The notes under the pieces: model-generated
Databases searched by the model: none
What the model saw: only the letters and a program-made list of their open reading frames with translations
Told to the model about the DNA's origin: nothing
Translations under genes and position numbers: made by a program
Assembly (NCBI GenBank): GCA_048772705.1
Contig: JBLWGC010000148.1
Location: 1 to 24,686 of the forward strand
Direction of reading: 5' to 3'
Source of the DNA: Leidyana gryllorum EB-2025a
Taxonomy: Eukaryota; Protista; Apicomplexa
Length of the DNA stretch: 24,686 nucleotides
Part shown: one piece after another, positions 1,354 through 21,216 of the stretch
Layout: each line of letters starts with the position of its first letter
How positions within the stretch are numbered: position 1 is the stretch's first letter

Positions 1354-1429
1354 TGCGATGTGATCGGAGGGGTCAGACACCAACTCAAGCGTGAATCCTT
1401 GGAATGGTGGGAAAACCAACTGTGTTTTC

Positions 1430-1500
1430 TGCATCTGCCGGGAATCGAACCCGGGTCGTCTCGATGGCAACGAGACATTCTACCACTAGACCACAGATGC
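1430..1500 (-). tRNA. tRNA-Gly(GCC)
   Basis: Intact cloverleaf; anticodon arm tctcg-ttgccat-cgaga. Confidence 0.93.
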
Positions 1501-1620
1501 ATAATATCTTGTTGAGCTAGCCGCCCGCTGTGCAGACCTCATATCATTCCGTGGTTTTCGCCCCTCATCAGACACCTGTTTCCAAAGACACACGCCCCTT
1601 TCACAGTCCGAAAGCTCCGC

Positions 1621-1693
1621 GCAGCCATGGTCTAGTGGTTACGACGTCTGCTTCACACGCAGAAGGTCCCGAGTTCGATCCTCGGTGGCTGTA
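1621..1693 (+). tRNA. tRNA-Val(CAC)
   Basis: tctgc-ttcacac-gcaga; T arm ccgag-ttcgatc-ctcgg. Confidence 0.92.
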
Positions 1694-1746
1694 GCTCGCA
1701 ACTTTATCTGAGCACCACGAAATCTGAAGCGGAAAAACGAACTGTG

Positions 1747-1817
1747 CTCCGAGACCGGGAATCGACCCTGGTCTTCCGCGTGATAGGCAGAAATCCTAAC
1801 CGCTATACTATCTCGGA
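1747..1817 (-). pseudogene. tRNA-Asp-derived pseudogene, anticodon ATC
   Basis: Paralog of 3068-3139 with G34>A and a damaged T arm. Confidence 0.8.
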
Positions 1818-1911
1818 CGCTCTCGATACGCCGGCCTCCATCCCCAGAAGTTCTTCCATTTTGAGATTCCACGGATAGAAAACGCGTGGGGCGGTGAGCC
1901 AACAACATTTC

Positions 1912-1991
1912 GGCAAGATGGCCGAGTGGTCTAAGGCGCTGTGTTAAGGCCGCAGTCCGAAAGGGCGTGGGTTCGAATCCCACTCTTGTCA
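1912..1991 (+). tRNA. tRNA-Leu(AAG)
   Basis: ctgtg-ttaaggc-cgcag, long variable arm, gtggg-ttcgaat-cccac. Confidence 0.93.
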
Positions 1992-2058
1992 ACCGTTGTA
2001 TTGTATTGAGTCGTCCCCTCTCTTCACCGATAGACAGGTCGTTCGACCTACATACAGC

Positions 2059-2129
2059 TGCACCTGCCGGGACTCGAACCCGGGTTACGACCTTGGAAGG
2101 GTCGCATCTTACCCTTAGACCACAAGTGC
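2059..2129 (-). tRNA. tRNA-Gly(TCC)
   Basis: Reverse complement: cgacc-cttccaa-ggtcg, ccggg-ttcgagt-cccgg. Confidence 0.9.
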
Positions 2130-2256
2130 AATTGCGAAAGATCTGCAGCACCCCGAGACACTCGGGCGATTTCTGCGCGCCACCGTCCGCCATACACCCT
2201 CATTGGCATGTGGTCAGGGATGAATTTCCAACATCTTCAACCTTCAGGTCATCTTT

Positions 2257-2322
2257 AGGGCACGCGCGGAGTTGGACCACGGTGATCTGCAGTCAGCTGC
2301 TCTACCACTGAGCTACGTACCC
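2257..2322 (-). pseudogene. tRNA-Cys(GCA) pseudogene
   Basis: gggtacgtagctcagtggtagagcagctgactgcagatca..., with an internal deletion before the T arm. Confidence 0.75.
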
Positions 2323-2418
2323 ACAAACTACCCGTCATACTTGCTCAACTCGATTCTGTCTTCTCATTTGAAGCAAAACGGCCGTTATTGTGCACGAGCT
2401 TGAACAACAACGAGTCAT

Positions 2419-2489
2419 GCATCTGTGGTCTAGGGGTAGAATGTGTCGTTGCCACCGAGACGACCCAGGTACGATTCCCGGCAGACGCA
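2419..2489 (+). pseudogene. tRNA-Gly(GCC) degenerate copy
   Basis: Paralog of 1430-1500 with several substitutions, including the T loop (tacg). Confidence 0.8.
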
Positions 2490-2612
2490 GGAGGCACGCC
2501 TCAAACAGCCGTGGCAGATTGACAGAGACGCTGACAAGCTTCGGCACGAGGCCCGACCAGGGGGCTGTTTGGTCTGCAGGTATGATTTTTCCTCGCTTGG
2601 AAGAACATTGCA

Positions 2613-2691
2613 GGTCTTGTAGCTCAGTCGGCAAAGCGTGTAGCTGTTTACCACAAAGTCGCAGTCTCGAAGCCTAGCGGTGCCGGGAGCT
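2613..2691 (+). pseudogene. tRNA-Asn(GTT) pseudogene
   Basis: tagctcagtcggcaaagcgtgtag-ctgttta-ccaca; T arm scrambled. A related, more decayed inverted copy lies at ~3698-3760. Confidence 0.6.
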
Positions 2692-2760
2692 GCGATATGC
2701 GACGCTCTGTTAGAGGTCGCAACTCTGTATTTAACTACCGACAGGTCGCCCTACCGAGTT

Positions 2761-2833
2761 TGGACGACCTGGGTATCGATCCCAGTACCTCTCGCATGCA
2801 AAGCGAGCGCTCTACCATCTGAGCTAGCCGCCC
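2761..2833 (-). tRNA. tRNA-Ala(TGC)
   Basis: Intact; ctcgc-tttgcat-gcgag, G3:U70 pair, atcgata T loop as in eukaryotic tRNA-Ala. Confidence 0.93.
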
Positions 2834-2893
2834 ATCCGCTCTACATGGAAAACCTTCTGCATCCAGTGGCTGACCGAGTGCCGATACAACGGC

Positions 2894-2973
2894 TGACAAG
2901 AGTGGGATTCGAACCCACGCCCTTTCGGACTGCGGCCTTAACACAGCGCCTTAGACCACTCGGCCATCTTGCC
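2894..2973 (-). tRNA. tRNA-Leu(AAG)
   Basis: Same sequence as 1912-1991, inverted. Confidence 0.93.
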
Positions 2974-3067
2974 GAAGTGTTCTTGGCTCGCCACTTTACA
3001 CGTTTTCTGTTGGTGAAGTCTCGAGAAGGGAGGACTTTTGGGGTTTCAGGCCGGTGTGTTCGGAGCG

Positions 3068-3139
3068 TCCGAGATAGTATAGTGGTTAGTATTTCCGCCT
3101 GTCACGCGGAAGACCCGGGTTCGATTCCCGGTCTAGGAG
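3068..3139 (+). tRNA. tRNA-Asp(GTC)
   Basis: tccgc-ctgtcac-gcgga; one acceptor-stem mismatch that is absent from the mirror copy. Confidence 0.88.
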
Positions 3140-3217
3140 CACAGTTGATCTCAGCTTAAGATTGTCTTCTTGCATTGCTTTTGGTGCTTAGTAAGCGAGC
3201 CGCTGAAAGTTGCGAGC

Positions 3218-3268
3218 TACAGTCACCGAGGATCGAACTCGGAACCTTCTGCGTGTTAAGCAGACGTC
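3218..3268 (-). pseudogene. tRNA-Val(AAC) 3' fragment
   Basis: Anticodon arm to 3' end only, within a mosaic block. Confidence 0.7.
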
Positions 3269-3352
3269 TTGAGATGTTAATTGTAAAGTGTCGACGCGGT
3301 GGCTGTGTTACTTCTAAAACTGCTTATCCCATCGGGTCAACCGACAACCCAG

Positions 3353-3426
3353 AGGGCTGTTCTGGGAATCAAACCCAGGACTCCTTCCACCCTAAGGAAG
3401 GATCATACCACTAGACCAAACAGCCG
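3353..3426 (-). pseudogene. tRNA-Pro(AGG), degenerate
   Basis: Paralog of 560-633 with T loop tttgatt and G1 changed. Confidence 0.75.
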
Positions 3427-3513
3427 CCTGTCGGTCGTGCAACCCGCTGGGTACACTCGAGAGAGTGGTCATACTATGTGAAGTACCACTAAATGCGATG
3501 GGGTCTGCACAGC

Positions 3514-3586
3514 GGGGGACTAGCTCAAATGGTGAAGCGCTCGCTTAGCGTGCAAGAGGTACTGGGATCAATGCCCAGGTCGTCCA
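3514..3586 (+). pseudogene. tRNA-Ala(AGC), degenerate
   Basis: ctcgc-ttagcgt-gcaag; several stem mismatches. Confidence 0.75.
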
Positions 3587-3863
3587 AAGTTTGTAGTGCT
3601 GCAACTGGCGCTATTTGACTACAGAGTTGAGAGCTTTGAGGGTGCCCTGTAGCCCTTAGATGGACTTGGGCACCGCAGTATGTGTGAAGGTTGCCTCAGA
3701 GACCGGATCTGCGAGTTTGTATTTTACAACCACACGCTCTGCCGACTAAGGTACAAGAGCCAGTTCCAATATCTCAGAGGTTAGTAGAGATACGCGTGTT
3801 GCAAGTGTCCGGTTGAGGGCTAGTCCGGAGGCTCTACCAACTCTTTTTGTGAAGGAGTGAATG

Positions 3864-3935
3864 GGCTGCGTGGTGTAGTGGTTAGCACTGGAGACTTTGA
3901 ATCTCCCGATCTGGGTTCGATTCCCGGCGCGACCT
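3864..3935 (+). tRNA. tRNA-Gln(TTG)
   Basis: ggaga-ctttgaa-tctcc; ttcgatt T loop; one acceptor mismatch. Confidence 0.85.
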
Positions 3936-3998
3936 CACAACTAATTCTCACTGCTTTGTGAAACCTCACCACTCCTCTTGATCTGCGGGACCTTCCGT

Positions 3999-4070
3999 GC
4001 AGCCATGGTCTAGTGGTCACGACGTCTGTTAACACGCAGAAGGTCCCGAGTTCGATCTTCGGTGGCTGTA
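3999..4070 (+). pseudogene. tRNA-Val(AAC) with a 1-nt deletion in the anticodon stem
   Basis: Paralog of 1621-1693; tctg-ttaacac-gcaga. Confidence 0.8.
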
Positions 4071-4123
4071 ACTCGCGTTTGTCAGGCGAGCACCACGAAA
4101 TCTAAAGCGGAAGAACGAAGTGT

Positions 4124-4195
4124 CTCCGAGACCGGTAATCGAACCCGGGTCTTCCGAGTGACAGGCGGAAATACTAAGCACTATACTATCTCGGA
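4124..4195 (-). pseudogene. tRNA-Asp(GTC), degenerate
   Basis: Paralog of 3068-3139 with D-loop, anticodon-stem and T-stem substitutions. Confidence 0.8.
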
Positions 4196-4290
4196 CGCTC
4201 GTGGATACCCCGGCCTTCAACCCCAAAAGTCCTCCCTTCTCGAGACTTCACGGACAGAAAGCGTGTAAAGTGGCGAGCCAAGGGCACTCC

Positions 4291-4370
4291 GGCAAGATGG
4301 CCGAGTGGTCCAAGGCGCTGTGTTAAGGCCGCAGTCCGAAAGGGCGTGGGTTCGAATCCCACTCTTGTCA
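4291..4370 (+). tRNA. tRNA-Leu(AAG)
   Basis: One D-loop difference from 1912-1991. Confidence 0.9.
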
Positions 4371-4424
4371 GCCGTTGTATCGGCCCTCGGTCAGTCACTG
4401 CATCCAATAGGTCTTCCATGTAGT

Positions 4425-4467
4425 GCGCATGCTAAGCGAGTGCTCTACCATTTGAGCTAGTTGTCCC
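4425..4467 (-). pseudogene. tRNA-Ala(AGC) 5' half
   Basis: Reverse complement gggacaactagctcaaatggtagagcactcgcttagcatgcg, then truncated. Confidence 0.7.
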
Positions 4468-4546
4468 TTGTGCACACTCCATCGCATTTGTTGGTTCTCA
4501 ACATAGTATGTCTCAACTGTCCTCAGCGGGTTGCACGACCAACAGG

Positions 4547-4620
4547 CGGCAGTTTGGTCTAGTGGTACGATCCTTCCTTAGTGTGGAAGGAGTCCCGGGT
4601 TCGATTCCAAGAACAGCCCT
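4547..4620 (+). pseudogene. tRNA-Pro body with anticodon mutated to AGT
   Basis: cttcc-ttagtgt-ggaag; T stem disrupted. Confidence 0.75.
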
Positions 4621-4936
4621 CTTGGTTGTCGGTTGACCCGATGGGATAAGCAGTTTTTAGAACCAATACAGCCACCTCGTTAGCCCACTTCGGTAGGGCA
4701 GTCTGCACCCTACTAAAAAACGGAGTGTTCGGGAATCGAATAGAGCACTTCCTCCAAGTGGAGGAAAATTATATCACAAGCACTTCAACTCGACATGCGC
4801 AGCAGTGGCCCCCATACAGCTAGCAAGCTTGCCTCGGTCGAAACGGAACGTCTTCCGCGTGCGAGGCTATGATGCGGATGGCCATATCCATTAGGCCACC
4901 GCACCATAGACAAGCTTTGGTCATCTCGGGAGCTTG

Positions 4937-5008
4937 TCCACTGTAGTCTAAGTGGTTAGGATATGCGGCTCTCACCCGCATGATCCGGGTTCAATCCCGG
5001 CAGTGGAA
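4937..5008 (+). tRNA. tRNA-Glu(CTC), T arm 1 nt short
   Basis: tccactg/cagtgga acceptor; tgcgg-ctctcac-ccgca. Confidence 0.8.
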
Positions 5009-5069
5009 GTCATTGGACCATTCGAGCAAAGTGCTCCAGTAACCTCCGTCAATAGTGACTGACTCGTGA

Positions 5070-5534
5070 GGCTGGCCACTGGCCGAGGCTGTCCTGGTCG
5101 TGGTTGGCCACATGCAACAACGCAAACAAGAGGCATACATCACCATTAGCCGCCTTCTCTACTCCGGGCCATACACTCTTCAGCGATGCGGTCTTAATCG
5201 GAAGAACTCGCTCGTCACTCAATGTACACAAGCAGATCCAATGAATTCTGCAACCCTGACCGATGCATGGGCAGCCCTTGTTTTCGCGGAGGAGTGGCCT
5301 CGAAGAAAGATCAGAGTTGCCCTTCCATCTCAAGATGCTTCGTGTCGGACAGATAGCCGCCAACTCCTCGAGATGATTTGACCGATCCGGTATGGTGAGC
5401 TCGACCTGCTTAGCTTCCTTCAACTTCCGGCTCTGCACCCAGAGCACCAGCCTTTTGCTGCCATCATTCGGAAAGATTTTAAACCCGCCCTGCATTCAGG
5501 ATTATGTCCTCATTTCCGAAGATTGAGCGAATGA
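5070..5534 (+). pseudogene. 5'-truncated reading frame open from the element boundary, one internal TGA
   Basis: Frame of ORF 5100-5381 is open from 5070 (GWPLAEAVLVV...) and continues 50 codons past TGA 5379-5381. Confidence 0.4.
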
Positions 5535-7248
5535 CAGTCAGTGTCAAGGGCTGGGGCTCGGCTGAAGGTGTGAAGTTCATCTGGACTCCCACGCCGAAAT
5601 GCTTGCCCCCTATCACAATCCACTGCGTAGACGATGAGATGTACATACAAAGCTGTATGAACTCCACGTGTGCGACTGAGTGGAGTTTCGGTTCCAGTGG
5701 GCCACCCTTCAACCACGTTTACTGCCGTACATCTCAGCCACATGCATTTGAGTCCGCCGAAGAGCCAAACACTTATTGTTCAGGATTTCTAATACTGCGA
5801 AGCAACGGCCACACATGGGTTAAAACGGCATTGCAGAGTGCCCAAAGCGCGTACAAAACGTGGTATACCAATGGGAGTGTTCTCCTGCTCGTCGAGGCCA
5901 TGTACTGGATGCGAACCACACAGATGGCGGAACTCCTCAATAAGATCCCTCCCTACCTGCGCATACTCGGCGTTTCACAACCCCGCATAAGCTTACATCC
6001 CGTCTGCATCCCACGCAATTGGCCTGCGAACTGCATTGCGATTTTCGTTGGTCTTCAACGATTCGATACCCATCCTGAACGACACAATATTACGGATCAT
6101 CTCGCCCCAGTACTCAAGAAGATGGAGAGTCTAGTCTGCCCCGACGCGTCTCAGCCAGAAACGGAGTTGACGAGTACCATGCCAGAAGACTGTGTCCCTA
6201 CAGTTCCCCCACCAGCCCTAAACGATGCCCCTAGATCACACCTCTCATTGACCATTCCTCGTTTGATGCCCTGCCTACCACAATCCTCTACATTGCACCG
6301 CATAACTACTGTTGCGATGAATGTTCTGATGCAGAAAGCGCGGGAAATTAGTGACCCCTCCAGGCGCTTCTCAATCGGACTGCACATAGTACATCCATTC
6401 CCGCACAGGGAATTACCACTTTACCAGGACCAGTCGGCAATGGACATCGTCGCACTGGTCGCTAATGACCTAGAGAAAAGTATCGGAGGCGTGGACCCCG
6501 AATTCGATCTCTGCAAAGCCTCGCGTTTCCGTTTCTGGGTGGCGTACCCAATCTTCTGGCGCCTAATCAGCACTGCCACTGCCGCGTGCCTCAGGTGAGC
6601 TTCGATTGTGGAATTCGTAATGATCATTTTCACAGCTCACTGCGGACCCCACGAAAGATACAAGGCAAAGTCTTTCAACAATGCTTGGTCTGCGGGGGAG
6701 ATCGTTTGGTTTCGAAGGCGGGACTCCCGCCGTCTAAGCTTCCTCGATATTGTCTCTGTGGTTTCAAGTGGCCCTCAGTCGACGACACCCGAATAAGGCG
6801 ATATATGGAGGCGAAGGAAGAGGAACTCCGTCAACTACGAGAAGTTGACATGTTGGCGTGCGTCCGTGGAGGTCTAACTTATTGGGTTGAAGACCTCTGC
6901 GGCGCCAAACTGAATGGTCGCGACGCGGAGTCAGTATGGACCGAGCTGACTGATGACCACTTGGTGCCTCCTCCTCCGCCCTACACGCCGACTCGGGCAG
7001 AGAGACAGAGTTTGGTGGTGATCAGAGGAGCTGGGAAGCTTGGCGCCATGTGCCAGCTTCTAAGGTACTTAGCCCCAGGGGCGACCTTCATAGAGCTGCG
7101 CGAGCTAGCAAAGGCTTGTGGGCGGTGTGGAGTGGGCGACTTCGCCTCTGCGAATAGGCCTTGTGGCTTTTGTGGCGGTTGGGAAAAGGTAGTGACGACA
7201 GATGAGTCGGCGCAGACAACCAGAGCGAGAATAGCGCAGTGGAGCTGA
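5504..7248 (+). CDS. Hypothetical ~567-aa protein with C-terminal Cys clusters; exons 5504-6594 and 6636-7248
   Basis: The two longest ORFs of the arm (364 and 220 aa) fuse in frame on removing AG|GTGAGC...TTTTCACAG| (6595-6635). Motifs CLVC, CLC, CGRC, CGFC. Confidence 0.65.
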
Positions 7249-7295
7249 ACGAAACAATATGACAACACTCTATCCGACAGCACGTCGCACGATAC

Positions 7296-7374
7296 AGCTT
7301 ACGGTAAGGCCTACGGTACGTCTTACGGGCCGTAACCCTGACCGTAAGACGTACCGTAAGCCTTACCGTAAGCT
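7296..7374. repeat. 33-bp-stem hairpin made of 12-bp-periodic (T/C)TACGG and CCGTAA motifs
   Basis: 7296-7328 pairs with 7342-7374 with one mismatch; 13-nt loop. Confidence 0.92.
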
Positions 7375-7436
7375 ATATTTTGCCACGGTACTGTCTCCTG
7401 GCTAATCTACGGGACTCGTGATCTTTGGCTTGCATT

Positions 7437-7508
7437 GCCTTCTTAGCTTAGGGGCAGAGCATTCGCTTAGTAAGCGAAAGGTCGCCGGTTCGATTCCGGC
7501 AGAAGGCT
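7437..7508 (+). tRNA. tRNA-Thr(AGT)
   Basis: gccttct/agaaggc acceptor; ttcgc-ttagtaa-gcgaa; gccgg-ttcgatt-ccggc. Confidence 0.92.
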
Positions 7509-7557
7509 TTGGTCACGACCCAATCAATTCTATAGCTGTTTCCCTCCTGCCCACACG

Positions 7558-7629
7558 TAGCAGTGCGTCGTTTCGATCGACGGACCTTTGGGTTTTGAGC
7601 CCAACACTCTTCCACTGAGCTACACTGCT
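7558..7629 (-). tRNA. Initiator tRNA-Met body with anticodon CAA
   Basis: A1:U72, GGG/CCC anticodon stem, atcgaaa T loop; loop ctcaaaa (anticodon at 7595-7597). Confidence 0.88.
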
Positions 7630-8047
7630 TAGTCTGCAACATGGTTGAGGGAGCCGAAATGCGATTCTTGAGATGTTAATTGCCTTGAGTGCCGAAGTGT
7701 CTGTTGCGCTAGGTATGTCGTTTGTTTCGTTAACGGGTGAGGCACTGCTACCAGTGTAGTGGGGCGGCTCCCCCGTCGTGGGTTGCACCGCGCGGCCACT
7801 GCGTGTAGTAATCACCATTTGGTTCACTCGTCGCGTGTCGTCTCTCTGTTTGTTCCCTGTGTCGTGTTACGTGTCTAGGAAAACCTAAGTGTGTCCGTGT
7901 AGCTACTTTCGCTGAGCCTAGTCTGGGTCGTGTAACAACCGGCCTACACAACTCCGTCTGGACCAAGGGACCCTCCGTGGAGGACGACCACTACGCCAAA
8001 GGCGGACCGATTGACGGTACTTGGTCGCGACCAATGTACCAGGATGT

Positions 8048-8098
8048 CTGTGTCTCCGTCTCGTGCCGGCCCGCAGGCCGGCACACACGGAGACACGG
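8048..8098. other. GC-rich stem-loop in the element leader
   Basis: gtgtctccgt..gtgccggcc-cgca-ggccggcac..acggagacac. Confidence 0.75.
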
Positions 8099-8154
8099 GC
8101 CAGACAGTTAGATCAAAATAGATCACTTGTGCTTACCTTTTCGTTACTTGTTGC

Positions 8155-9082
8155 GTGAACATGGAACCGACCGCCGACTTACCGATGACTGTCAGCCGGA
8201 TCGGCTGCAGGCCCGTGGCCGGCGGCAGGAGCTTTAGTCGCGGTACGTTTCGATGGCATTGTTGTCTGTTCGTGCCTCTGTGTAGGCTGTCTACTGTGTT
8301 CATGCAACACTGGGAAAAGGTGGGCCTAAGGCCTGACAAACATCAACGTCTGTCCTTCTACGAGTGGCGTAGGAGCCTACCGCCGACGGTATGGGAAGCA
8401 TCGCAGGAATACTATATGCCATTAATAGACTCTTACGTCAGACTACAGAACCTCATTAAAGAAGGAAACATCACCCCAAACCGACTACAACGAATACTCG
8501 AAGATGCCCAACTCGAACGCGGCCATGGCAACGAAGCCATAACATACATCGATGGAAATCCGAAAGGACCCGACAGTCACAGAAGACAGCCCAATCATCG
8601 ACACAAGCGGAGACAAAGGCATTGCAATTCCTCAACCAAGACCTAAAGTCATTACCGTGGACAATAAAGGAGATACTAACAGACTCCCGCAACCTGCGAC
8701 CCAAGAATCCACAAGTGACCTGGATCCCACGAGAAGGAAACGTCGCCGATCGACAGATTCAGAACCAGGCAATTCGAGAATCCTCCCAACGTTCCTGGAC
8801 ATATCAAGGCAATACAGACGACAAGCCGAGAAACTACGAAGTATGGAGAGCTCCCTCCAAGCGGCTACAGATGGACTGGCGGAAGCAGCAGAGCTCCTCA
8901 TTATTCTTGGAAGATATATCGAGCGACATGAAGCCGCAAGCTTACAGTTAACATCCAGGCCCTCCCCGAACCCTGGTTTAAGAACTCCCGGCTGGGAGAA
9001 GCCAGACTGCTTGGCAGCCACTTTTCCCTCGATGAAGCTACCCATCACGAGCTCGCTAAGACCGGATACCAGGCTCCGGTAG
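8155..9082 (+). pseudogene. Frameshifted ORF1/gag-position protein with basic and helical segments
   Basis: Overlapping ORFs 8155-8646 and 8552-9082; RRKRRR patch and a helical stretch. Assignment is by position only. Confidence 0.45.
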
Positions 9083-10059
9083 CCACCATTCGCCGTCTAA
9101 GCACCGAGAGGGTTGAAAGGAAGAAGCGGGTCCCCAAAGGCAAGGCAGGGGCGGTACGACGCCGGAGAGTTGACCAAGTTCTCTCCCAGTCGCCAGCCGC
9201 TCCGCCCGCTTCAGAGGTGGTTCTCCCCCCGTCCGGCGAAGATGTCACTGCGGGGGCACTGTCGGCTCCATCGGCCTTCCACTGTGAGAGGGCAGAGTTT
9301 TCCGAGGAGACCGAGGGCGTACTGCTGTTCCCCTCAGTGGGTCGAATGAAACGGTAAGACTATCAAGCAAACTCTGTCACTAACTAGGCAATCAGACAAC
9401 TGCTGCGGCCCCATCCACTGTGTATATCCCGCCACTACCCCTCCGCAGGCCGTCCAACTGTGAGGTTCTCTCTGCCGCGGTCAATATGGACCACTCGCCG
9501 GGCTCTTCTTCATTGTTCCCCGACGTCCAGGTAAGCCCCCCCTTTTGTTAGACTCAGTTCACTCTATTGCGCAGACCCCCGGTGATCTCACTTCACGTGC
9601 TCAGCCCCAAGCCTGGGATCCCGTTCGAGACAGGTACATGCAAGAGCATCCCTCGCTCTTTGCGGTGCCTGGGAATCCTGCAAGAGGCCAGGAATTGGTA
9701 GGATACTGTCAGCGACGCTACGGCAGGTCTCGATAATGAGATTCCGCCTGTTCCATGAGACATAGGAGTCTCTACTAATGGCACGAAGCGAGGTCTTTGC
9801 TGCCCGGAGTTGCGACCGACGGAAATTGGGACATCGAGGCTGCAGAGCTTTCGCAGACCGCCGGGGGGATGAACCTTCCGCGACAGTACGACCAGCAGAC
9901 TCGTATGTCGCTCCCCAACCTTGTTGCCCTTCGCCCGGGAAACCACCGAACGTGTTTCACCACTCGGATGTGGTCCAGGGGCCCATACTACAAGAGGAAC
10001 CCACTGTGCTCATGCGAGGTCCTCTAGCCCCAGGTACGTTAGCCTCACGACTGAAAGGG

Positions 10060-10390
10060 TACACGGATCTGCTTCCCCGAGCACTGTCTAGAGTGCCTCC
10101 GAGAGTGTGGGTGGCTGAACTGGATGCATTTATGGAGCGGATGGTTTCACATTTACCTGAGGACACAGTGGGGCGCAAATTACCGGCCTCTTCAAAGCTG
10201 TCTGTCAAAAGGTGGTGAGCTCGTTGCCGATAACGTGCTTCGGCTTCAGCTACCTACACGGAAGCATTCTACAGTTTGGCTCGAGCCTATCAGTCGTGGG
10301 CGTACTGCGTGCCACATTCGGAGGAGGATCAGCTGCGCGTCTCCGGGCCATGGGTACCCGCTGCGTCCACCTTATGTCCCCAGTGTGTCG
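10060..10390 (+). pseudogene. Reverse-transcriptase core relic
   Basis: Across frames: PPRVWVAELD/LWSGWFHI (10120-10153), DNV/FGFSY (~10239), RLRAMGTRCVH/YV (10338-10378). Order and spacing resemble the DIRS RT motifs DLKDAYFHI, LPFGL and LRxxGIxxxxYLDD; the catalytic DD is absent. Confidence 0.55.
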
Positions 10391-10730
10391 CACCCTTAAA
10401 CTGTCCGGTGAAATCGTCTCCGGTCACCACCAACCCCCGATCTTCATGCCGAGGCCGCGTCACCCCCATTCTCGCGATGGTTCGAGATGTTACAGGTTGC
10501 GAGCAGCCAGCTGTGCTCTTCACAGCGTTCTGCGATCCTGAGCTGGGTGACGAGGCGGAAGATGCTGGACGGAGACTGGACTTTCTTGAAGACGAACGGC
10601 GTTCATACCACGGCGTTGTTTGTCTTCCTGGCGCTGGCTATGCTGTAGCGGTCCGGTCTCTTAACAGATGATGGGAAGCCCAATGGGGAGAGGTGGCCGT
10701 GGAAGATGGCAGAGGACGGAGGACTAGACG

Positions 10731-10985
10731 TTGACACTACACGCAGACTGGGGCGCGGTACTACAAGCGCTTGGGCCTGTCATTGACGGTTGGGATTGGG
10801 GGAACCAGGCAGCCAAAGCCAAGACTACACTTGGCAAGTTACTGGTATACGTGGCCCAGGATGAAGCGTGGCAGCCGCTGAAGGACTTCTCGGCAAGCTA
10901 CACAGCTCTCCCCAACGTTAGAGCACGGAGGATGACCAATGGTGTAAGAAGACGAACGGTCTTAACGTGTAGCTGGAAGAGTTAA
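10731..10985 (+). pseudogene. Possible RNase H N-terminal relic
   Basis: LTLHADWGAVLQ resembles a deleted version of the xTDASxxGWGAVL motif and lies between RT and YR. Confidence 0.35.
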
Positions 10986-11255
10986 CAAGAAATGCGCTCT
11001 ACTTATCTGTTGTCCAAGAATTCTAACTCTCCTGATATTTCGCCTGTCCCAACTGTCCCTTTCCATGAATCCCGTTACTAGCCAATTGGGACACTGGGAC
11101 TCGGGACTATCTCAGGGTTACGCTCCTGAGACCTTCGCTATGCTCATCGTAAGACTTGATATCGCTTCTCGAGACTGTCGTCTCGGAGTAGCAATCCGGA
11201 ATATCATGTCCTTACAAATGGAGAGTGTAGCCGAATCAAGTCGCCCTCGAAGGCA

Positions 11256-11786
11256 TTGCGGCAGGTCTGGTGCGAGGCGAAGAATCCGGCGTTGTTCGCA
11301 GCCGCTGTCGTCTTCTATCTGACGGGGCTGAGAGCTGTTGAACTGGGGGCTCTGCGGCTGGCGGTGCTGGAGAAGGAGGGGGACGCCATCAAGAGGGCGA
11401 AGAAGAGGGCCGGAAAAGTAGAGACTGTACGCATCGTCTTCCCCGATTGGGTGCGGAAGTTGCTGTACAATCTACTGAAGATCAAAGAGCGTGCGAGGTC
11501 GGAGAAGGCGTCCGACGCTCCTCTGTTCCTCCGCTTCGTCCTCTTCCCCGGGCCGCAGAAGGAGGCAAGGTGGGAGACGACAGCTCGTCGTTTACGGGAC
11601 CGCTTCCAGGCTGTCCTTGGGATCCCGCCCACGATGCGCTGTGGAAACCACCTGTGGCGTCGGGCATTCGCGACGGAGGCCGCTAAACTCCGGACTGGCG
11701 TCGCTGTTGTAACCCCAAGTCGCTACTCAAGGGGAACGAGGCCCAGTTCTCATCTCTGCATACTTTCGACCACAAGTCAGACTTAG
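11256..11786 (+). pseudogene. Tyrosine recombinase catalytic domain, frameshifted near C terminus
   Basis: YLTGLRAVEL (box I Arg), KRAKK, NHLWRRAFAT (HxxR). Removing one C at 11713-11716 gives QVATQGERGPVLISAYF, with a candidate catalytic Tyr at 11761-11763. Confidence 0.85.
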
Positions 11787-12255
11787 AACCAAGTTAGTAT
11801 TCTTGCCGACAAGTCTACCACGAATATGTCGCACACGACGGCGCAAAACAAGAACTACGACTTGTTGTACCAAGTGCAAAAGTTATCTTAGGCCGCCTCT
11901 TGCCTAGTCCAACTCTGACTTAGCCAACTTTGCTTGCGTGTGTCTCTCGCTCTGGTGCGCTGGACACACACGGTAGTTCTCCCCGACACCACACTCTGAT
12001 CATTCATGCGAGTGTCTGCACAGTTACACTGTCGCAGAGAGCTCAGACCACTAGGGTGCATTAGCCTTTACGCTTTAGTAGTAGTTGCTTTACGTTCGTT
12101 AATAATGCCTTTTCACCATCTTATACATGCCCCTATATAAGTGCCAAATATGTAGGGAAGTATCCAGATGGATGTTAATTCGATTGGAAATTTCACCAAG
12201 TCGAATTTGGCCACCCGATAGGAAGTTGACCATCAGGCAAACACGAACTACAACA

Positions 12256-12612
12256 GTAGAGAGCCGGAGGGCAGAGCCTCGGCTAAGTTTGTGTGCCGCA
12301 CACGAGGTGGGCAGGCCGCACACTTGGTGGGCCATTTGGGAAGGTCCTGGGACTGGGAAAGGGGTGTGTACGGTGTGTACAGTGTGTATGGCGGCGAGAG
12401 TAACTACTAAACAGGGCTCGGAGGCACGTGGTAAATAGCATGCAAACACAGGGAAGCGAAAAGTGGTAGAGAGCCGGAGGGCAGCAAAAGCATGGCTGGC
12501 CTCGGCTAAGTTTGTGTGCCGCACACAAGGTGGGCACGCCGCACACTTGGTGGGCCATTTGGGAAGGTCTTGGGACTGGGAAAGGGGTGTGTACGGTGTG
12601 TACAGTGTGTAT
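12256..12612. repeat. Direct repeat pair 12256-12389 and 12466-12612 at the spacer edge
   Basis: gtagagagccggagggcag...gtgtgtacggtgtgtacagtgtgtat occurs twice; the second copy is 13 nt longer. Confidence 0.93.
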
Positions 12613-12964
12613 CCGGGACTTGGGAAACATGATTTGGGGCGGCAATCCTAATGGTGTGTGAGATCTCCAAGTCTATAAAAACTTGGAGGCCAGGTGCACG
12701 ATTTTGTGTGTGCGCCTTGTGCGTCTGGGCGTGCGCCTGGTATCCAAGTGCATTTGCGCGTGGGAATCTGGGTTGCGCCTGGTATCCGCCTCGTTTGCGC
12801 TTGGTTTGCCTGTGTTTTAGTGATCTTGTTTTATGCCATGTGGGATGTTTTGTAGGCCTTATTGTCGCCTCGGAACTTGTATTGCTGGCCGACTCAGCGT
12901 GTCTGAGGGGTTTACAGAAATGCCATTACCGGAAGTGTGGGCGTGCTCGTTTACATGTCGATGA

Positions 12965-13396
12965 TTATGTACCATTGCTTCTATCGTTGTTGGTGTTCTC
13001 CTGCCGGTAAAAAGGTGGATGGTCGCCATCTCGTCGTGTTAGGGGTGGTCGAGTTCTCCTCCGGTGCTTTGGTGGCGGAACGGAAAGGGGGTCGTGGGCA
13101 GTTGTGGAGCTCCGCTTCTTCGATCTCGGCTGGGAGGGGGGTGGGGAGGGTTCGCGTGGTCCATCCAAGTCGTCGAGGCCGACGCTGCTTCTCTCTGAGA
13201 GAGCCTCCGGACGACGTGACGTCCGGCTGCATTCGGGCTCCTCCAGATCGCCTTCCTCTCCATCGTCGGAGGACTCGAGACTATCAAAGCGGAGAACCTG
13301 GGAGCCAGCCTCTACCGCTTTGCTCGTGATCTCCTTTTGAAATACCCACTCGACCCTCGTACCCGTGATGGGTTTGGACGAGTTGTAGATATCCAA
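12965..13396 (-). CDS. Hypothetical protein fragment (acidic, then Pro/basic low-complexity tail)
   Basis: 143-codon frame without ATG in the unique spacer, open slightly further upstream (EAGHDVGADWERNGVYL); no recognisable family. Confidence 0.3.
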   Translation of the reverse strand: MDIYNSSKPITGTRVEWVFQKEITSKAVEAGSQVLRFDSLESSDDGEEGDLEEPECSRTSRRPEALSERSSVGLDDLDGPREPSPPPSQPRSKKRSSTTAHDPLSVPPPKHRRRTRPPLTRRDGDHPPFYRQENTNNDRSNGT

Positions 13397-14038
13397 ATAG
13401 ACCCCGTTCCTCTCCCAGTCGGCACCAACATCGTGGCCAGCCTCCGAGTGCTCGACTCACACACATCAACGTAGTGGCGGACCGAGCCGGTTCCCGACTG
13501 CCCCAGATCCTTGGCGACTGTTGTAGTTCGTGTTTGCCTGATGGTCAACTTCCTATCGGGTGGCCAAATTCGACTTGGTGAAATTTCCAATCGAATTAAC
13601 ATCCATCTGGATACTTCCCTACATATTTGGCACTTATATAGGGGCATGTATAAGATGGTGAAAAGGCATTATTAACGAACGTAAAGCAACTACTACTAAA
13701 GCGTAAAGGCTAATGCACCCTAGTGGTCTGAGCTCTCTGCGACAGTGTAACTGTGCAGACACTCGCATGAATGATCAGAGTGTGGTGTCGGGGAGAACTA
13801 CCGTGTGTGTCCAGCGCGAGGCTCCGCAAGAGTGCGAGCGACTGGCACATGGGTGGAGTGAGAGAGACACCAGAGCGAGAGACACACGCAAGCAAAGTTG
13901 GCTAAGTCAGAGTTGGACTAGGCAAGAGGCGGCCTAAGATAACTTTTGCACTTGGTACAACAAGTCGTAGTTCTTGTTTTGCGCCGTCGTGTGCGACATA
14001 TTCGTGGTAGACTTGTCGGCAAAAATACTAACTTGGTT

Positions 14039-14569
14039 CTAAGTCTGACTTGTGGTCGAAAGTATGCAGAGATGAGAACTGGGCCTCGTTCCCCTTGAGT
14101 AGCGACTTGGGGTTACAACAGCGACGCCAGTCCGGAGTTTAGCGGCCTCCGTCGCGAATGCCCGACGCCACAGGTGGTTTCCACAGCGCATCGTGGGCGG
14201 GATCCCAAGGACAGCCTGGAAGCGGTCCCGTAAACGACGAGCTGTCGTCTCCCACCTTGCCTCCTTCTGCGGCCCGGGGAAGAGGACGAAGCGGAGGAAC
14301 AGAGGAGCGTCGGACGCCTTCTCCGACCTCGCACGCTCTTTGATCTTCAGTAGATTGTACAGCAACTTCCGCACCCAATCGGGGAAGACGATGCGTACAG
14401 TCTCTACTTTTCCGGCCCTCTTCTTCGCCCTCTTGATGGCGTCCCCCTCCTTCTCCAGCACCGCCAGCCGCAGAGCCCCCAGTTCAACAGCTCTCAGCCC
14501 CGTCAGATAGAAGACGACAGCGGCTGCGAACAACGCCGGATTCTTCGCCTCGCACCAGACCTGCCGCAA
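14039..14569 (-). pseudogene. Tyrosine recombinase domain (mirror copy)
   Basis: Translation identical to 11256-11786. Confidence 0.85.
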
Positions 14570-16742
14570 TGCCTTCGAGGGCGACTTGATTCGGCTACAC
14601 TCTCCATTTGTAAGGACATGATATTCCGGATTGCTACTCCGAGACGACAGTCTCGAGAAGCGATATCAAGTCTTACGATGAGCATAGCGAAGGTCTCAGG
14701 AGCGTAACCCTGAGATAGTCCCGAGTCCCAGTGTCCCAATTGGCTAGTAACGGGATTCATGGAAAGGGACAGTTGGGACAGGCGAAATATCAGGAGAGTT
14801 AGAATTCTTGGACAACAGATAAGTAGAGCGCATTTCTTGTTAACTCTTCCAGCTACACGTTAAGACCGTTCGTCTTCTTACACCATTGGTCATCCTCCGT
14901 GCTCTAACGTTGGGGAGAGCTGTGTAGCTTGCCGAGAAGTCCTTCAGCGGCTGCCACGCTTCATCCTGGGCCACGTATACCAGTAACTTGCCAAGTGTAG
15001 TCTTGGCTTTGGCTGCCTGGTTCCCCCAATCCCAACCGTCAATGACAGGCCCAAGCGCTTGTAGTACCGCGCCCCAGTCTGCGTGTAGTGTCAACGTCTA
15101 GTCCTCCGTCCTCTGCCATCTTCCACGGCCACCTCCCCCCATTGGGCTTCCCATCATCTGTTAAGAGACCGGACCGCTACAGCATAGCCAGCGCCAGGAA
15201 GACAAACAACGCCGTGGTATGAACGCCGTTCGTCTTCAAGAAAGTCCAGTCTCCGTCCAGCATCTTCCGCCTCGTCACCCAGCTCAGGATCGCAGAACGC
15301 TGTGAAGAGCACAGCTGGCTGCTCGCAACCTGTAACATCTCGAACCATCGCGAGAATGGGGGTGACGGGGCCTCGGCATGAAGATCGGGGGTTGGTGGTG
15401 ACCGGAGACGATTTCACCGGACAGTTTAAGGGTGCGACACACTGGGGACATAAGGTGGACGCAGCGGGTACCCATGGCCCGGAGACGCGCAGCTGATCCT
15501 CCTCCGAATGTGGCACGCAGTACGCCCACGACTGATAGGCTCGAGCCAAACTGTAGAATGCTTCCGTGTAGGTAGCTGAAGCCGAAGCACGTTATCGGCA
15601 ACGAGCTCACCACCTTTTGACAGACAGCTTTGAAGAGGCCGGTAATTTGCGCCCCACTGTGTCCTCAGGTAAACGTGAAACCATCCGCTCCATAAATGCA
15701 TCCAGTTCAGCCACCCACACTCTCGGAGGCACTCTAGACAGTGCTCGGGGAAGCAGATCCGTGTACCCTTTCAGTCGTGAGGCTAACGTACCTGGGGCTA
15801 GAGGACCTCGCATGAGCACAGTGGGTTCCCCTTGTAGTATGGGCCCCTGGACCACATCCGAGTGGTGAAACACGTTCGGTGGTCTCCCGGGCGAAGGGCA
15901 ACAAGGTTGGGGAGCGACATACGAGTCTGCTGGTCGTACTGTCGCGGAAGGTTCATCCCCCCGGCGGTCTGCGAAAGCTCTGCAGCCTCGATGTCCCAAT
16001 TTCCGTCGGTCGCAACTCCGGGCAGCAAAGACCTCGCTTCGTGCCATTAGTAGAGACTCCTATGTCTCATGGAACAGGCGGAATCTCATTATCGAGACCT
16101 GCCGTAGCGTCGCTGACAGTATCCTACCAATTCCTGGCCTCTTGCAGGATTCCCAGGCACCGCAAAGAGCGAGGGATGCTCTTGCATGTACCTGTCTCGA
16201 ACGGGATCCCAGGCTTGGGGCTGAGCACGTGAAGTGAGATCACCGGGGGTCTGCGCAATAGAGTGAACTGAGTCTAACAAAAGGGGGGGCTTACCTGGAC
16301 GTCGGGGAACAATGAAGAAGAGCCCGGCGAGTGGTCCATATTGACCGCGGCAGAGAGAACCTCACAGTTGGACGGCCTGCGGAGGGGTAGTGGCGGGATA
16401 TACACAGTGGATGGGGCCGCAGCAGTTGTCTGATTGCCTAGTTAGTGACAGAGTTTGCTTGATAGTCTTACCGTTTCATTCGACCCACTGAGGGGAACAG
16501 CAGTACGCCCTCGGTCTCCTCGGAAAACTCTGCCCTCTCACAGTGGAAGGCCGATGGAGCCGACAGTGCCCCCGCACTGACATCTTCGCCGGACGGGGGG
16601 AGAACCACCTCTGAAGCGGGCGGAGCGGCTGGCGACTGGGAGAGAACTTGGTCAACTCTCCGGCGTCGTACCGCCCCTGCCTTGCCTTTGGGGACCCGCT
16701 TCTTCCTTTCAACCCTCTCGGTGCTTAGACGGCGAATGGTGG

Positions 16743-17670
16743 CTACCGGAGCGTGGTATCCGGTCTTAGCGAGCTCGTGATGGGTAGCTTCATCGAGGGA
16801 AAAGTGGCTGCCAAGCAGTCTGGCTTCTCCCAGCCGGGAGTTCTTAAACCAGGGTTCGGGGAGGGCCTGGATGTTAACTGTAAGCTTGCGGCTTCATGTC
16901 GCTCGATATATCTTCCAAGAATAATGAGGAGCTCTGCTGCTTCCGCCAGTCCATCTGTAGCCGCTTGGAGGGAGCTCTCCATACTTCGTAGTTTCTCGGC
17001 TTGTCGTCTGTATTGCCTTGATATGTCCAGGAACGTTGGGAGGATTCTCGAATTGCCTGGTTCTGAATCTGTCGATCGGCGACGTTTCCTTCTCGTGGGA
17101 TCCAGGTCACTTGTGGATTCTTGGGTCGCAGGTTGCGGGAGTCTGTTAGTATCTCCTTTATTGTCCACGGTAATGACTTTAGGTCTTGGTTGAGGAATTG
17201 CAATGCCTTTGTCTCCGCTTGTGTCGATGATTGGGCTGTCTTCTGTGACTGTCGGGTCCTTTCGGATTTCCATCGATGTATGTTATGGCTTCGTTGCCAT
17301 GGCCGCGTTCGAGTTGGGCATCTTCGAGTATTCGTTGTAGTCGGTTTGGGGTGATGTTTCCTTCTTTAATGAGGTTCTGTAGTCTGACGTAAGAGTCTAT
17401 TAATGGCATATAGTATTCCTGCGATGCTTCCCATACCGTCGGCGGTAGGCTCCTACGCCACTCGTAGAAGGACAGACGTTGATGTTTGTCAGGCCTTAGG
17501 CCCACCTTTTCCCAGTGTTGCATGAACACAGTAGACAGCCTACACAGAGGCACGAACAGACAACAATGCCATCGAAACGTACCGCGACTAAAGCTCCTGC
17601 CGCCGGCCACGGGCCTGCAGCCGATCCGGCTGACAGTCATCGGTAAGTCGGCGGTCGGTTCCATGTTCAC
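16743..17670 (-). pseudogene. ORF1-position frameshifted protein (mirror copy)
   Basis: Mirror of 8155-9082. Confidence 0.45.
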
Positions 17671-18207
17671 GCAACAAGTAACGAAAAGGTAAGCACAAGT
17701 GATCTATTTTGATCTAACTGTCTGGCCCGTGTCTCCGTGTGTGCCGGCCTCCGGCCGGCACGAGACGGAGACACAGACATCCTGGTACATTGGTCGCGAC
17801 CAAGTACCGTCAATCGGTCCGCCTTTGGCGTAGTGGTCGTCCTCCACGGAGGGTCCCTTGGTCCAGACGGAGTTGTGTAGGCCGGTTGTTACACGACCCA
17901 GACTAGGCTCAGCGAAAGTAGCTACACAGACACACTTAGGTTTTCCTAGACACGTAACACGACACAGGGAACAAACAGAGAGACGACACGCGACGAGTGA
18001 ACCAAATGGTGATTACTACACGCAGTGGCCGCGCAGTGCAACCCACGACGGGGGAGCCGCCCCACTACACTGGTAGCAGTGCCTCACCCGTTAACGAAAC
18101 CCGTTAATGAAACAAACGACATACCTAGCGCAACAGACACTTCGGCACTCAAGGCAATTAACATCTCAAGAATCGCATTTCGGCTCCCTCAACCATGTTG
18201 CAGACTA

Positions 18208-18279
18208 AGCAGTGTAGCTCAGTGGAAGAGTGTTGGGCTCATAACCCAAAGGTCCGTCGATCGAAACGACGCACTGCTA
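18208..18279 (+). tRNA. Initiator tRNA-Met(CAT)
   Basis: agcagtg...ttggg-ctcataa-cccaa...cgtcg-atcgaaa-cgacg-cactgct-a. Confidence 0.95.
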
Positions 18280-18328
18280 CGTGTGGGCAGGAGGGAAACA
18301 GCTATAGAATTGATTGGGTCGTGACCAA

Positions 18329-18400
18329 AGCCTTCTGCCGGAATCGAACCGGCGACCTTTCGCTTACTAAGCGAATGCTCTGCCCCTAAGCTAAGAAGGC
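18329..18400 (-). tRNA. tRNA-Thr(AGT)
   Basis: Mirror of 7437-7508. Confidence 0.92.
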
Positions 18401-18462
18401 AATGCAAGCCAAAGATCACCCGTCCCGTAGATTAGCCAGGAGACAGTACCGTGGCAAAATAT

Positions 18463-18541
18463 AGCTTACGGTAAGGCTTACGGTACGTCTTACGGTCAGG
18501 GTTACGGCCCGTAAGACGTACCGTAGGCCTTACCGTAAGCT
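18463..18541. repeat. Hairpin (mirror of 7296-7374)
   Basis: Same 33-bp stem. Confidence 0.92.
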
Positions 18542-18588
18542 GTATCGTGCGACGTGCTGTCGGATAGAGTGTTGTCATATTGTTTCGT

Positions 18589-20333
18589 TCAGCTCCACTG
18601 CGCTATTCTCGCTCTGGTTGTCTGCGCCGACTCATCTGTCGTCACTACCTTTTCCCAACCGCCACAAAAGCCACAAGGCCTATTCGCAGAGGCGAAGTCG
18701 CCCACTCCACACCGCCCACAAGCCTTTGCTAGCTCGCGCAGCTCTATGAAGGTCGCCCCTGGGGCTAAGTACCTTAGAAGCTGGCACATGGCGCCAAGCT
18801 TCCCAGCTCCTCTGATCACCACCAAACTCTGTCTCTCTGCCCGAGTCGGCGTGTAGGGCGGAGGAGGAGGCACCAAGTGGTCATCAGTCAGCTCGGTCCA
18901 TACTGACTCCGCGTCGCGACCATTCAGTTTGGCGCCGCAGAGGTCTTCAACCCAATAAGTTAGACCTCCACGGACGCACGCCAACATGTCAACTTCTCGT
19001 AGTTGACGGAGTTCCTCTTCCTTCGCCTCCATATATCGCCTTATTCGGGTGTCGTCGACTGAGGGCCACTTGAAACCACAGAGACAATATCGAGGAAGCT
19101 TAGACGGCGGGAGTCCCGCCTTCGAAACCAAACGATCTCCCCCGCAGACCAAGCATTGTTGAAAGACTTTGCCTTGTATCTTTCGTGGGGTCCGCAGTGA
19201 GCTGTGAAAATGATCATTACGAATTCCACAATCGAAGCTCACCTGAGGCACGCGGCAGTGGCAGTGCTGATTAGGCGCCAGAAGATTGGGTACGCCACCC
19301 AGAAACGGAAACGCGAGGCTTTGCAGAGATCGAATTCGGGGTCCACGCCTCCGATACTTTTCTCTAGGTCATTAGCGACCAGTGCGACGATGTCCATTGC
19401 CGACTGGTCCTGGTAAAGTGGTAATTCCCTGTGCGGGAATGGATGTACTATGTGCAGTCCGATTGAGAAGCGCCTGGAGGGGTCACTAATTTCCCGCGCT
19501 TTCTGCATCAGAACATTCATCGCAACAGTAGTTATGCGGTGCAATGTAGAGGATTGTGGTAGGCAGGGCATCAAACGAGGAATGGTCAATGAGAGGTGTG
19601 ATCTAGGGGCATCGTTTAGGGCTGGTGGGGGAACTGTAGGGACACAGTCTTCTGGCATGGTACTCGTCAACTCCGTTTCTGGCTGAGACGCGTCGGGGCA
19701 GACTAGACTCTCCATCTTCTTGAGTACTGGGGCGAGATGATCCGTAATATTGTGTCGTTCAGGATGGGTATCGAATCGTTGAAGACCAACGAAAATCGCA
19801 ATGCAGTTCGCAGGCCAATTGCGTGGGATGCAGACGGGATGTAAGCTTATGCGGGGTTGTGAAACGCCGAGTATGCGCAGGTAGGGAGGGATCTTATTGA
19901 GGAGTTCCGCCATCTGTGTGGTTCGCATCCAGTACATGGCCTCGACGAGCAGGAGAACACTCCCATTGGTATACCACGTTTTGTACGCGCTTTGGGCACT
20001 CTGCAATGCCGTTTTAACCCATGTGTGGCCGTTGCTTCGCAGTATTAGAAATCCTGAACAATAAGTGTTTGGCTCTTCGGCGGACTCAAATGCATGTGGC
20101 TGAGATGTACGGCAGTAAACGTGGTTGAAGGGTGGCCCACTGGAACCGAAACTCCACTCAGTCGCACACGTGGAGTTCATACAGCTTTGTATGTACATCT
20201 CATCGTCTACGCAGTGGATTGTGATAGGGGGCAAGCATTTCGGCGTGGGAGTCCAGATGAACTTCACACCTTCAGCCGAGCCCCAGCCCTTGACACTGAC
20301 TGTCATTCGCTCAATCTTCGGAAATGAGGACAT
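18589..20333 (-). CDS. Hypothetical ~567-aa Cys-rich protein (mirror copy; intron 19202-19242)
   Basis: ORF translations identical to 5504-6598 and 6586-7248. Confidence 0.65.
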
Positions 20334-20828
20334 AATCCTGAATGCAGGGCGGGTTTAAAATCTTTCCGAATGATGGCAGCAAAAGGCTGGTGCTCTGGGT
20401 GCAGAGCCGGAAGTTGAAGGAAGCTAAGCAGGTCGAGCTCACCATACCGGATCGGTCAAATCATCTCGAGGAGTTGGCGGCTATCTGTCCGACACGAAGC
20501 ATCTTGAGATGGAAGGGCAACTCTGATCTTTCTTCGAGGCCACTCCTCCGCGAAAACAAGGGCTGCCCATGCATCGGTCAGGGTTGCAGAATTCATTGGA
20601 TCTGCTTGTGTACATTGAGTGACGAGCGAGTTCTTCCGATTAAGACCGCATCGCTGAAGAGTGTATGGCCCGGAGTAGAGAAGGCGGCTAATGGTGATGT
20701 ATGCCTCTTGTTTGCGTTGTTGCATGTGGCCAACCACGACCAGGACAGCCTCGGCCAGTGGCCAGCCTCACGAGTCAGTCACTATTGACGGAGGTTACTG
20801 GAGCACTTTGCTCGAATGGTCCAATGAC

Positions 20829-20900
20829 TTCCACTGCCGGGATTGAACCCGGATCATGCGGGTGAGAGCCGCATATCCTAACCACTTAGACTACAGTGGA
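20829..20900 (-). tRNA. tRNA-Glu(CTC)
   Basis: Mirror of 4937-5008. Confidence 0.8.
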
Positions 20901-21216
20901 CAAGCTCCCGAGATGACCAAAGCTTGTCTATGGTGCGGTGGCCTAATGGATATGGCCATCCGCATCATAGCCTCGCACGCGGAAGACGTTCCGTTTCGAC
21001 CGAGGCAAGCTTGCTAGCTGTATGGGGGCCACTGCTGCGCATGTCGAGTTGAAGTGCTTGTGATATAATTTTCCTCCACTTGGAGGAAGTGCTCTATTCG
21101 ATTCCCGAACACTCCGTTTTTTAGTAGGGTGCAGACTGCCCTACCGAAGTGGGCTAACGAGGTGGCTGTATTGGTTCTAAAAACTGCTTATCCCATCGGG
21201 TCAACCGACAACCAAG

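Follow-up and report, generated by a model that had tools for sequence, protein, structure and literature searches.

The question raised by this locus is what kind of DNA entered the spacer between a tRNA-Glu gene and a tRNA-Thr gene, and by which route. The window (the whole stretch analyzed, 24,686 nt) is the entire contig C148 (JBLWGC010000148.1) of the Leidyana gryllorum EB-2025a assembly, which comprises 15.5 Mb in 237 contigs. Within it a tRNA-Glu(CTC) gene (4937-5008, plus strand; ARAGORN, and Rfam at 57.1 bits) and a tRNA-Thr(AGT) gene (7437-7508, plus strand; ARAGORN and Rfam) lie to the left and right of a spacer that is split by a 2343-bp insert (5070-7412, plus strand). Genome comparison gave the insert as single copy apart from its mirror image. 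The contig is palindromic, so that statements about the insert hold twice, for 5061-7421 and for the mirrored 18416-20776 (minus strand). In a preliminary description of the window it was suggested that the insert might be the 3′ part of a 5′-truncated member of an undescribed family targeting the RNA polymerase III start region of tRNA genes. The analysis showed instead that an orphan gene was inserted here once, with duplication of a 9-bp target; the insertion is real but unexplained.

The 9-bp target duplication

The insert is bounded by GACTCGTGA on both sides, the distal copy lying at 5061-5069 and the proximal copy at 7413-7421. The repeat is exactly 9 bp long because the adjoining base differs on each side, and the chance of a 9-bp match was ∼4e-6. 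The length of the insert, the flanking repeat and the 15 nt between the proximal copy and tRNA-Thr were all correctly placed in the preliminary description.

The flanks of the insert (61 nt on the left, 96 nt on the right) each have hundreds of copies in the genome, with 354 and 968 first-look candidates respectively. Matches to the two flanks overlapped by exactly 9 bp at at least 22 other loci among those listed. Six empty loci were fetched (on contigs C217, C131, C54, C105, C84 and C166); each reads ...agtgactGACTCGTGAtctttgg... and contains the 9-mer once. Several empty paralogs are 100% identical to both the 61-nt and the 96-nt flank. Two empty sites within the window, already recognized in the preliminary description, were confirmed at 269-277 (GATTCGTGA) and 22825-22817 (GTTTCGTGA); both are diverged paralogs. 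By the comparison with empty sites, the target was an ordinary copy of a much-repeated spacer and the insertion duplicated 9 bp of it. Both the insertion and its 9-bp target duplication are genuine. The identical empty flanks are consistent with a young event, an appearance that homogenization of the array could mimic.

The mirror copy in the right arm is identical except for its proximal repeat, which reads GACGGGTGA and is 2 nt off. TCGTGA is found at the corresponding position in all empty sites; the left-arm state is therefore ancestral, and GACGGGTGA is a later change or a consensus error. The duplication is thus not shortened to 4 bp, as had been considered in case the right-arm junction were the true sequence, and its length of 9 bp stands.

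The empty site at 269-277 is surrounded by a decayed module (130-337). This contains a degenerate tRNA-Glu-like sequence that was not called by ARAGORN, and a tRNA-Thr that breaks off near 337, beyond which lie short repeats (gtaagtctcttagccac).

Gene, ends and copy number of the insert

A gene in two exons is predicted on the plus strand. Exon 1 (5504-6594, 1091 nt) and exon 2 (6636-7248, including the stop codon at 7246-7248) are joined across a predicted 41-nt GT-AG intron (6595-6635, AG/GTGAGC...TTTTCACAG/C). The intron has good splice signals and was predicted from the sequence and the two open reading frames. The coding parts of 1091 and 610 nt total 1701 nt (567 codons) and would encode a protein of 567 aa. 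Exon 2 encodes two zinc-ribbon-like motifs (CxxC...CxC/CxxC).

The two exons were searched separately, each as its own query. Pfam, NCBIfam and PHROGs returned no family for either, the sole matches being two or three at E values of 0.04-0.25. A word search of 5.8 billion proteins gave nothing for exon 1 or exon 2, and a phmmer search of 1.84 billion representatives with exon 1 gave one match, to the translation of a tandem repeat, which was judged spurious. Nothing meaningful was obtained from the PDB sequences, nothing from scans of viral and metagenome contigs, and scores of ≤0.81, at the noise level, from the ESM Atlas. Single-sequence AlphaFold2 models of the two exons had mean predicted local distance difference test (pLDDT) values of 34 and 41 and were unusable. 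The Foldseek comparison suggested in the preliminary description, run with the exon 1 model, yielded no TM-score above 0.2, and a hint of an RNase H-like fold in that model (beta-beta-beta-alpha-beta-alpha) was dropped on account of its low confidence. The predicted protein is accordingly an orphan, with no homolog across all databases searched.

The ATG is preceded by 434 bp within the insert. This 5′ region (5070-5503, plus strand), the presumed promoter and 5′ untranslated region, contained no terminal inverted repeat, long terminal repeat (LTR) or TACGG motif in sequence comparisons. The preliminary description had placed the 5′ end inside an open frame and considered a truncation there. 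A frame is indeed open from the first base of the insert at 5070 to 5381, in a register other than that of the main gene, and an antisense frame crosses the left edge. Neither had relatives, and the 18 differences from a related piece on contig C26 (described below) fitted no reading frame, with no synonymous excess in any. A coding edge frame was rejected on these grounds. On this evidence the 434 bp before the ATG appear to be non-coding, and truncation at the 5′ end is unsupported. A solo LTR, or an LTR concealed within 5070-5318, was likewise rejected, the sequence resembling neither the LTRs nor the 3′ end of the insert.

The ends of the insert read GGCTGG...CTACGG, with ...CTAATCTACGG at the 3′ end. 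No inverted repeats between the ends and no LTRs or other direct terminal repeats were detected with 7-nt seeds, and neither poly(A) nor a 3′ simple repeat is present. These blanks, together with those for reverse transcriptase and transposase motifs, bear out the preliminary description. The gene is followed by a 164-bp tail, within which folding and a motif scan identified a hairpin (7296-7375) with a 33-bp stem built of 11-bp dyads, CTTACSGTAAG, in a 12-bp phase (−46.8 kcal/mol, z = −9.1). Both the hairpin and the terminal CTACGG had been noted before as forming the 3′ end; both are there, the hairpin stopping 37 nt short of CTACGG. The CTTACSGTAAG motif occurs 23 times in the window, where 4.2 occurrences are expected, and the two copies of the hairpin account for nearly all of them; the phased TACGG pattern was found elsewhere in the genome solely in an unrelated coding repeat. 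No Rfam family matched the hairpin above threshold. The array resembles a set of binding sites for a dimeric DNA-binding protein, as inferred from the motif arrangement. From its sequence the insert looks like a complete gene unit, consisting of upstream region, gene and tail.

BLAST of the whole insert against the 15.5-Mb assembly returned only this contig (the copy and its mirror) and one 209-bp remnant, and six-frame searches of the assembly with exon 1, exon 2 and the antisense open reading frame returned no further copy. Copies with common 3′ ends, variable 5′ ends or other target duplications, which the preliminary description had named as what would support a family, were absent from the assembly.

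The remnant corresponds to 5319-5527 of the insert (plus strand) and lies at C26:30796-30588 with 91% identity and 18 differences. It adjoins an LTR end (...TACAACA) and a gag-protease-reverse transcriptase-RNase H-integrase-chromodomain array. The order in C26:30588-30824 is an inverted 28-nt LTR 5′ end, the 209-bp piece, and a Ty3/gypsy gag that begins mid-gene; piece and gag have 2-3 nt in common at their junction. The possibility that the piece is the leader of a Ty3/gypsy element was rejected. Two intact relatives, on C25 and C180, have longer gag frames, and their alignment to C26 covers only the part from C26:30589 downward, starting in mid-gag; C26 is therefore a chimera of a 209-bp piece of insert type and a 5′-truncated retrotransposon. 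The chimera may have been made by a template switch of reverse transcriptase onto the 5′ end of the orphan-gene mRNA, which would then start near 5319; equally possibly, the piece is a remnant of an old second copy. Whichever origin holds, there is no family in this assembly. C26 illustrates, concretely and on a small scale, how a retrotransposon can become joined to unrelated DNA.

Routes of entry and comparison with known elements

The favored reading, held tentatively, is a single, one-off and apparently recent transposition-like insertion, at the DNA level and non-replicative, of a low-copy unclassified element. One of the hundreds of identical tRNA-Glu/tRNA-Thr spacers would have been cut with a 9-bp stagger, and filling-in of the stagger would have given the GACTCGTGA duplication. 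A self-contained gene unit would have entered, composed of the upstream region, the intron-containing gene for the 567-aa protein and the 3′ tail with its dyad array. The movement would have been that of a very low-copy mobile DNA lacking terminal inverted repeats, cut-and-paste-like and non-replicative, with no donor copy left behind. It could have proceeded by cut-and-paste or by excision as a circle followed by re-entry, and the encoded protein or the dyad array may have taken part.

This event was ranked first because a staggered cut, later filled in, would leave just such a clean, fixed-length duplication between undamaged flanks. The lack of a donor or second full copy is as expected for non-replicative movement. 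The retained intron, in a compact and complete unit, points to DNA and not to processed RNA. The subterminal phased dyads are strongly over-represented, and no second such array occurs in the genome, a pattern expected of protein-binding sites. The 91% identical piece on C26 is a trace left elsewhere, of a sequence type older than the insertion looks. Non-replicative, cut-and-paste-like movement is the most economical mechanism.

Several points weigh against it. The insert has neither terminal inverted repeats nor a second-end motif, and no transposase, recombinase or nuclease domain was recognizable in the gene (Pfam, NCBIfam, PHROGs, PDB). The domains PF10551 (Mutator-like elements, MULEs) and PF12762 (IS1595/Merlin), which belong to enzymes known to leave 9-bp duplications and able to do so in trans, had no match in the assembly. 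A single copy is not enough to demonstrate mobility. Integration of a circle at a microhomology also leaves a short direct repeat at both ends, and the assembly is possibly incomplete, in which case a donor could be missing.

In outline the insert behaves like a low-copy DNA transposon, and it cannot be filed under any family. The earlier statement that it fits none of the families named there was upheld; for each of the kinds compared here, at least one tested defining feature was missing. With Mutator and the MULEs the insert shares the 9-11 bp length of the duplication, here exactly 9 bp and verified at empty sites. Non-TIR MULEs and Pack-MULEs of plants and some fungi, which lack long terminal inverted repeats (TIRs), also make 9-bp duplications and can carry genes other than transposase. 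The insert differs in having not even short terminal inverted repeats (7-nt seeds) and no family of copies, and the transposase domain is missing from both exons (Pfam) as well as from the assembly. The 8-9 bp duplication length of Merlin/IS1595 also fits; the insert again lacks the terminal inverted repeats and the assembly the transposase domain. Dada elements occupy a fixed site inside small-RNA genes, make 6-7 bp duplications and encode a DDE transposase, whereas the insert lies in a spacer and not in a gene, has a 9-bp duplication and carries no transposase domain. Helitrons leave the target unduplicated, insert between A and T, and have 5′ TC and 3′ CTRR ends. Like the insert, they lack terminal inverted repeats and have a hairpin close to the 3′ end; the insert differs in its 9-bp duplication, in its GGCTGG...CTACGG ends and in having no Rep/helicase (Pfam). 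Cryptons and DIRS-like elements, moved by tyrosine recombinases, likewise need no terminal inverted repeats, and direct repeats can result from crossover at a common core. No Phage_integrase match was obtained in the insert, the only tyrosine-recombinase-like frame being a weak one outside it (11160-11783, E about 0.1), and a 9-bp core without flanking inverted binding sites is unlike known sites of these enzymes.

Fanzor/TnpB carriers, whose RuvC nuclease is split by a zinc ribbon and which have a structured guide RNA at the end of the element, were considered in view of the C-terminal zinc ribbon and the structured 3′ end, and were rejected. No OrfB or RuvC match was obtained in Pfam at E values up to 1, the hairpin matched no Rfam family above threshold, and there was no match among the PDB sequences, which include Fanzor and TnpB structures.

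In its strongest form the transposition-like reading would make the insert the only intact copy of an autonomous cut-and-paste transposon of a new kind without terminal inverted repeats, the 567-aa protein with its two zinc-ribbon-like motifs being a transposase that binds the 12-bp-phased CTTACSGTAAG dyads near one end and makes 9-bp staggered cuts. This was rated improbable. If the protein does move the insert, it would represent a transposase class unconnected, as far as can be detected, to the DDE, tyrosine, serine or HUH enzymes, and would be a notable find. On present evidence, an orphan gene has entered a highly repeated tRNA field once and cleanly. The locus can serve as a marker of how DNA enters tRNA arrays, and its interest is modest unless the protein drives the movement.

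The nearest competitor of the transposition-like reading, itself a possibility of lower standing, is repair-mediated capture. Here 2.3 kb of DNA would have been joined at a 9-bp microhomology, one GACTCGTGA copy having come with the incoming DNA and no transposase being needed. The source could be an excised extrachromosomal circle, or a template-switch copy made at a fork stalled by a tRNA gene. Repeated duplication and inversion have built the tRNA field around the locus, the contig itself being an inverted duplication with 10.8-kb arms and 2 nt common at its inner junction, and the insert has no transposon ends or enzyme. By estimate, 2.3 kb of DNA and the array have many chance 9-mers in common, so that a 9-bp microhomology is always available. 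Excision of a circle would also account for the missing donor. However, end joining usually uses 0-4 nt of microhomology with small deletions, and a clean 9-bp duplication with both flanks intact is unlike it; a template switch that copies its source should have left a donor copy, which the searches of the assembly did not reveal. Transposition-like entry and capture are nearly equal, with the former placed ahead, and sequence from a single genome does not allow a choice between them.

It is unlikely that a non-LTR reverse transcriptase inserted an unspliced transcript by target-primed retroposition, a mechanism that typically gives duplications of variable length, such as 9 bp. The 9-bp duplication and the lack of terminal inverted repeats and LTRs fit, the structured 3′ end could serve a stringent-type reverse transcriptase as a recognition element, and the C26 chimera suggests that RNA of the gene met a reverse transcriptase before. 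Set against these are the lack of poly(A) or a 3′ microsatellite, the kept intron, the 434 nt upstream of the ATG, and the absence from the assembly of both a parent gene and the LINE-type endonuclease domain PF14529. The TRE-type non-LTR retroposons of Dictyostelium, and processed retrocopies, are similar in having no terminal repeats, a duplication of several bp and a tRNA gene nearby; the insert differs from them in having no reverse transcriptase or endonuclease gene, no oligo(A) and no parent copy. Copies with nested 5′ truncations, as of a non-LTR retroposon, are absent from the assembly.

The tRNA-targeting family of the preliminary description is very improbable. The insertion is at −24/−15 relative to tRNA-Thr and represents one event, whereas tRNA-targeting Ty3/gypsy elements integrate repeatedly at a fixed short distance upstream of RNA polymerase III genes. 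This position falls inside the interval of 13-33 bp upstream of a tRNA gene that has been reported for DGLT-A, and is near that of Ty3 (PMC5911963). The frame open to the 5′ edge was a further point in favor of a truncated element. However, 18% of the intergenic positions in the array lie ≤30 bp upstream of a tRNA gene and 73% lie ≤100 bp from one, and given this background and a single event the position says little about targeting. Where tRNA genes are packed this densely, an insertion lying close to one gives no evidence of targeting. Among the hundreds of identical target spacers this one alone is filled, no other copy exists in the assembly, and the edge frame has neither coding signal nor relatives. 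A complete gene with 434 bp before its ATG does not look like the 3′ part of an element. The LTR family characterized in the window makes 5-bp duplications. The genome does hold Ty3/gypsy chromoviruses, from which the insert differs in having no LTRs (TG...CA), no gag or pol domains, and a duplication of 9 bp where 4-6 bp are expected (5 bp at the solo LTR of the window); its sole link to them is the 209-bp piece joined to a broken gag on C26. The preliminary description had held that the proposal would fall if the genome contained no other copies, and with none found it is close to refuted in this assembly. Membership of the insert in a tRNA-targeting family is unsupported, and the case for a truncated retroposon is not made.

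A chimeric join that placed the insert in the array during assembly is the least probable explanation. Fold-back long reads can give near-perfect palindromes such as this contig. A false join, however, would not yield an exact 9-bp duplication from which the array runs on in register on both sides, and the two arms differ around the insert by indels and 4 substitutions.

Setting of the locus

The window contains 40-43 tRNA genes of cytosolic type (ARAGORN; Rfam). The tRNA-Glu/tRNA-Thr module is present in hundreds of near-identical copies on dozens of contigs, and a large share of the small contigs of the assembly is therefore tRNA array.

Almost the whole window is an inverted duplication, in which 1407-12257 pairs with 13517-24685 at ∼99% identity around a unique 1.26-kb center (12258-13516). 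The arms differ by 68 gap columns, the left arm having a 51-bp deletion at 11957. At the inner junction only 2 nt of sequence are common. The inner ends of the arms match, within 2 nt, the 5′ ends of two head-to-head 603-bp LTR copies, of which the right copy alone has a 5-bp duplication on both sides. This suggests either a genuine fold-back rearrangement at an LTR end or a fold-back artefact of assembly.

The LTR at 13519-14120 (mirror 11705-12255) is a solo LTR of a Ty3/gypsy chromovirus family (TGTTGTA...TACAACA). It is bordered by the 5-bp duplication GCGAC and has 98% identity to the LTRs at C26:22177-22779 and 26543-27145.

A second block of foreign DNA occupies 7696-11704. It begins 66 nt upstream of a minus-strand tRNA gene (7557-7629), at the point where homology to the paralog at 22544-22703 stops, and no reverse transcriptase match was obtained in ten open reading frames. 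The weak tyrosine-recombinase match at 11160-11783 (Pfam, E 0.11-0.15) lies outside the insert, 4 kb away from it. Elsewhere in the assembly the HSP70 domain has 40 matches, tandem paralog clusters included, with loci at C230:1577555-1594793, C104:1252909-1268878 and C2:201839-211179.

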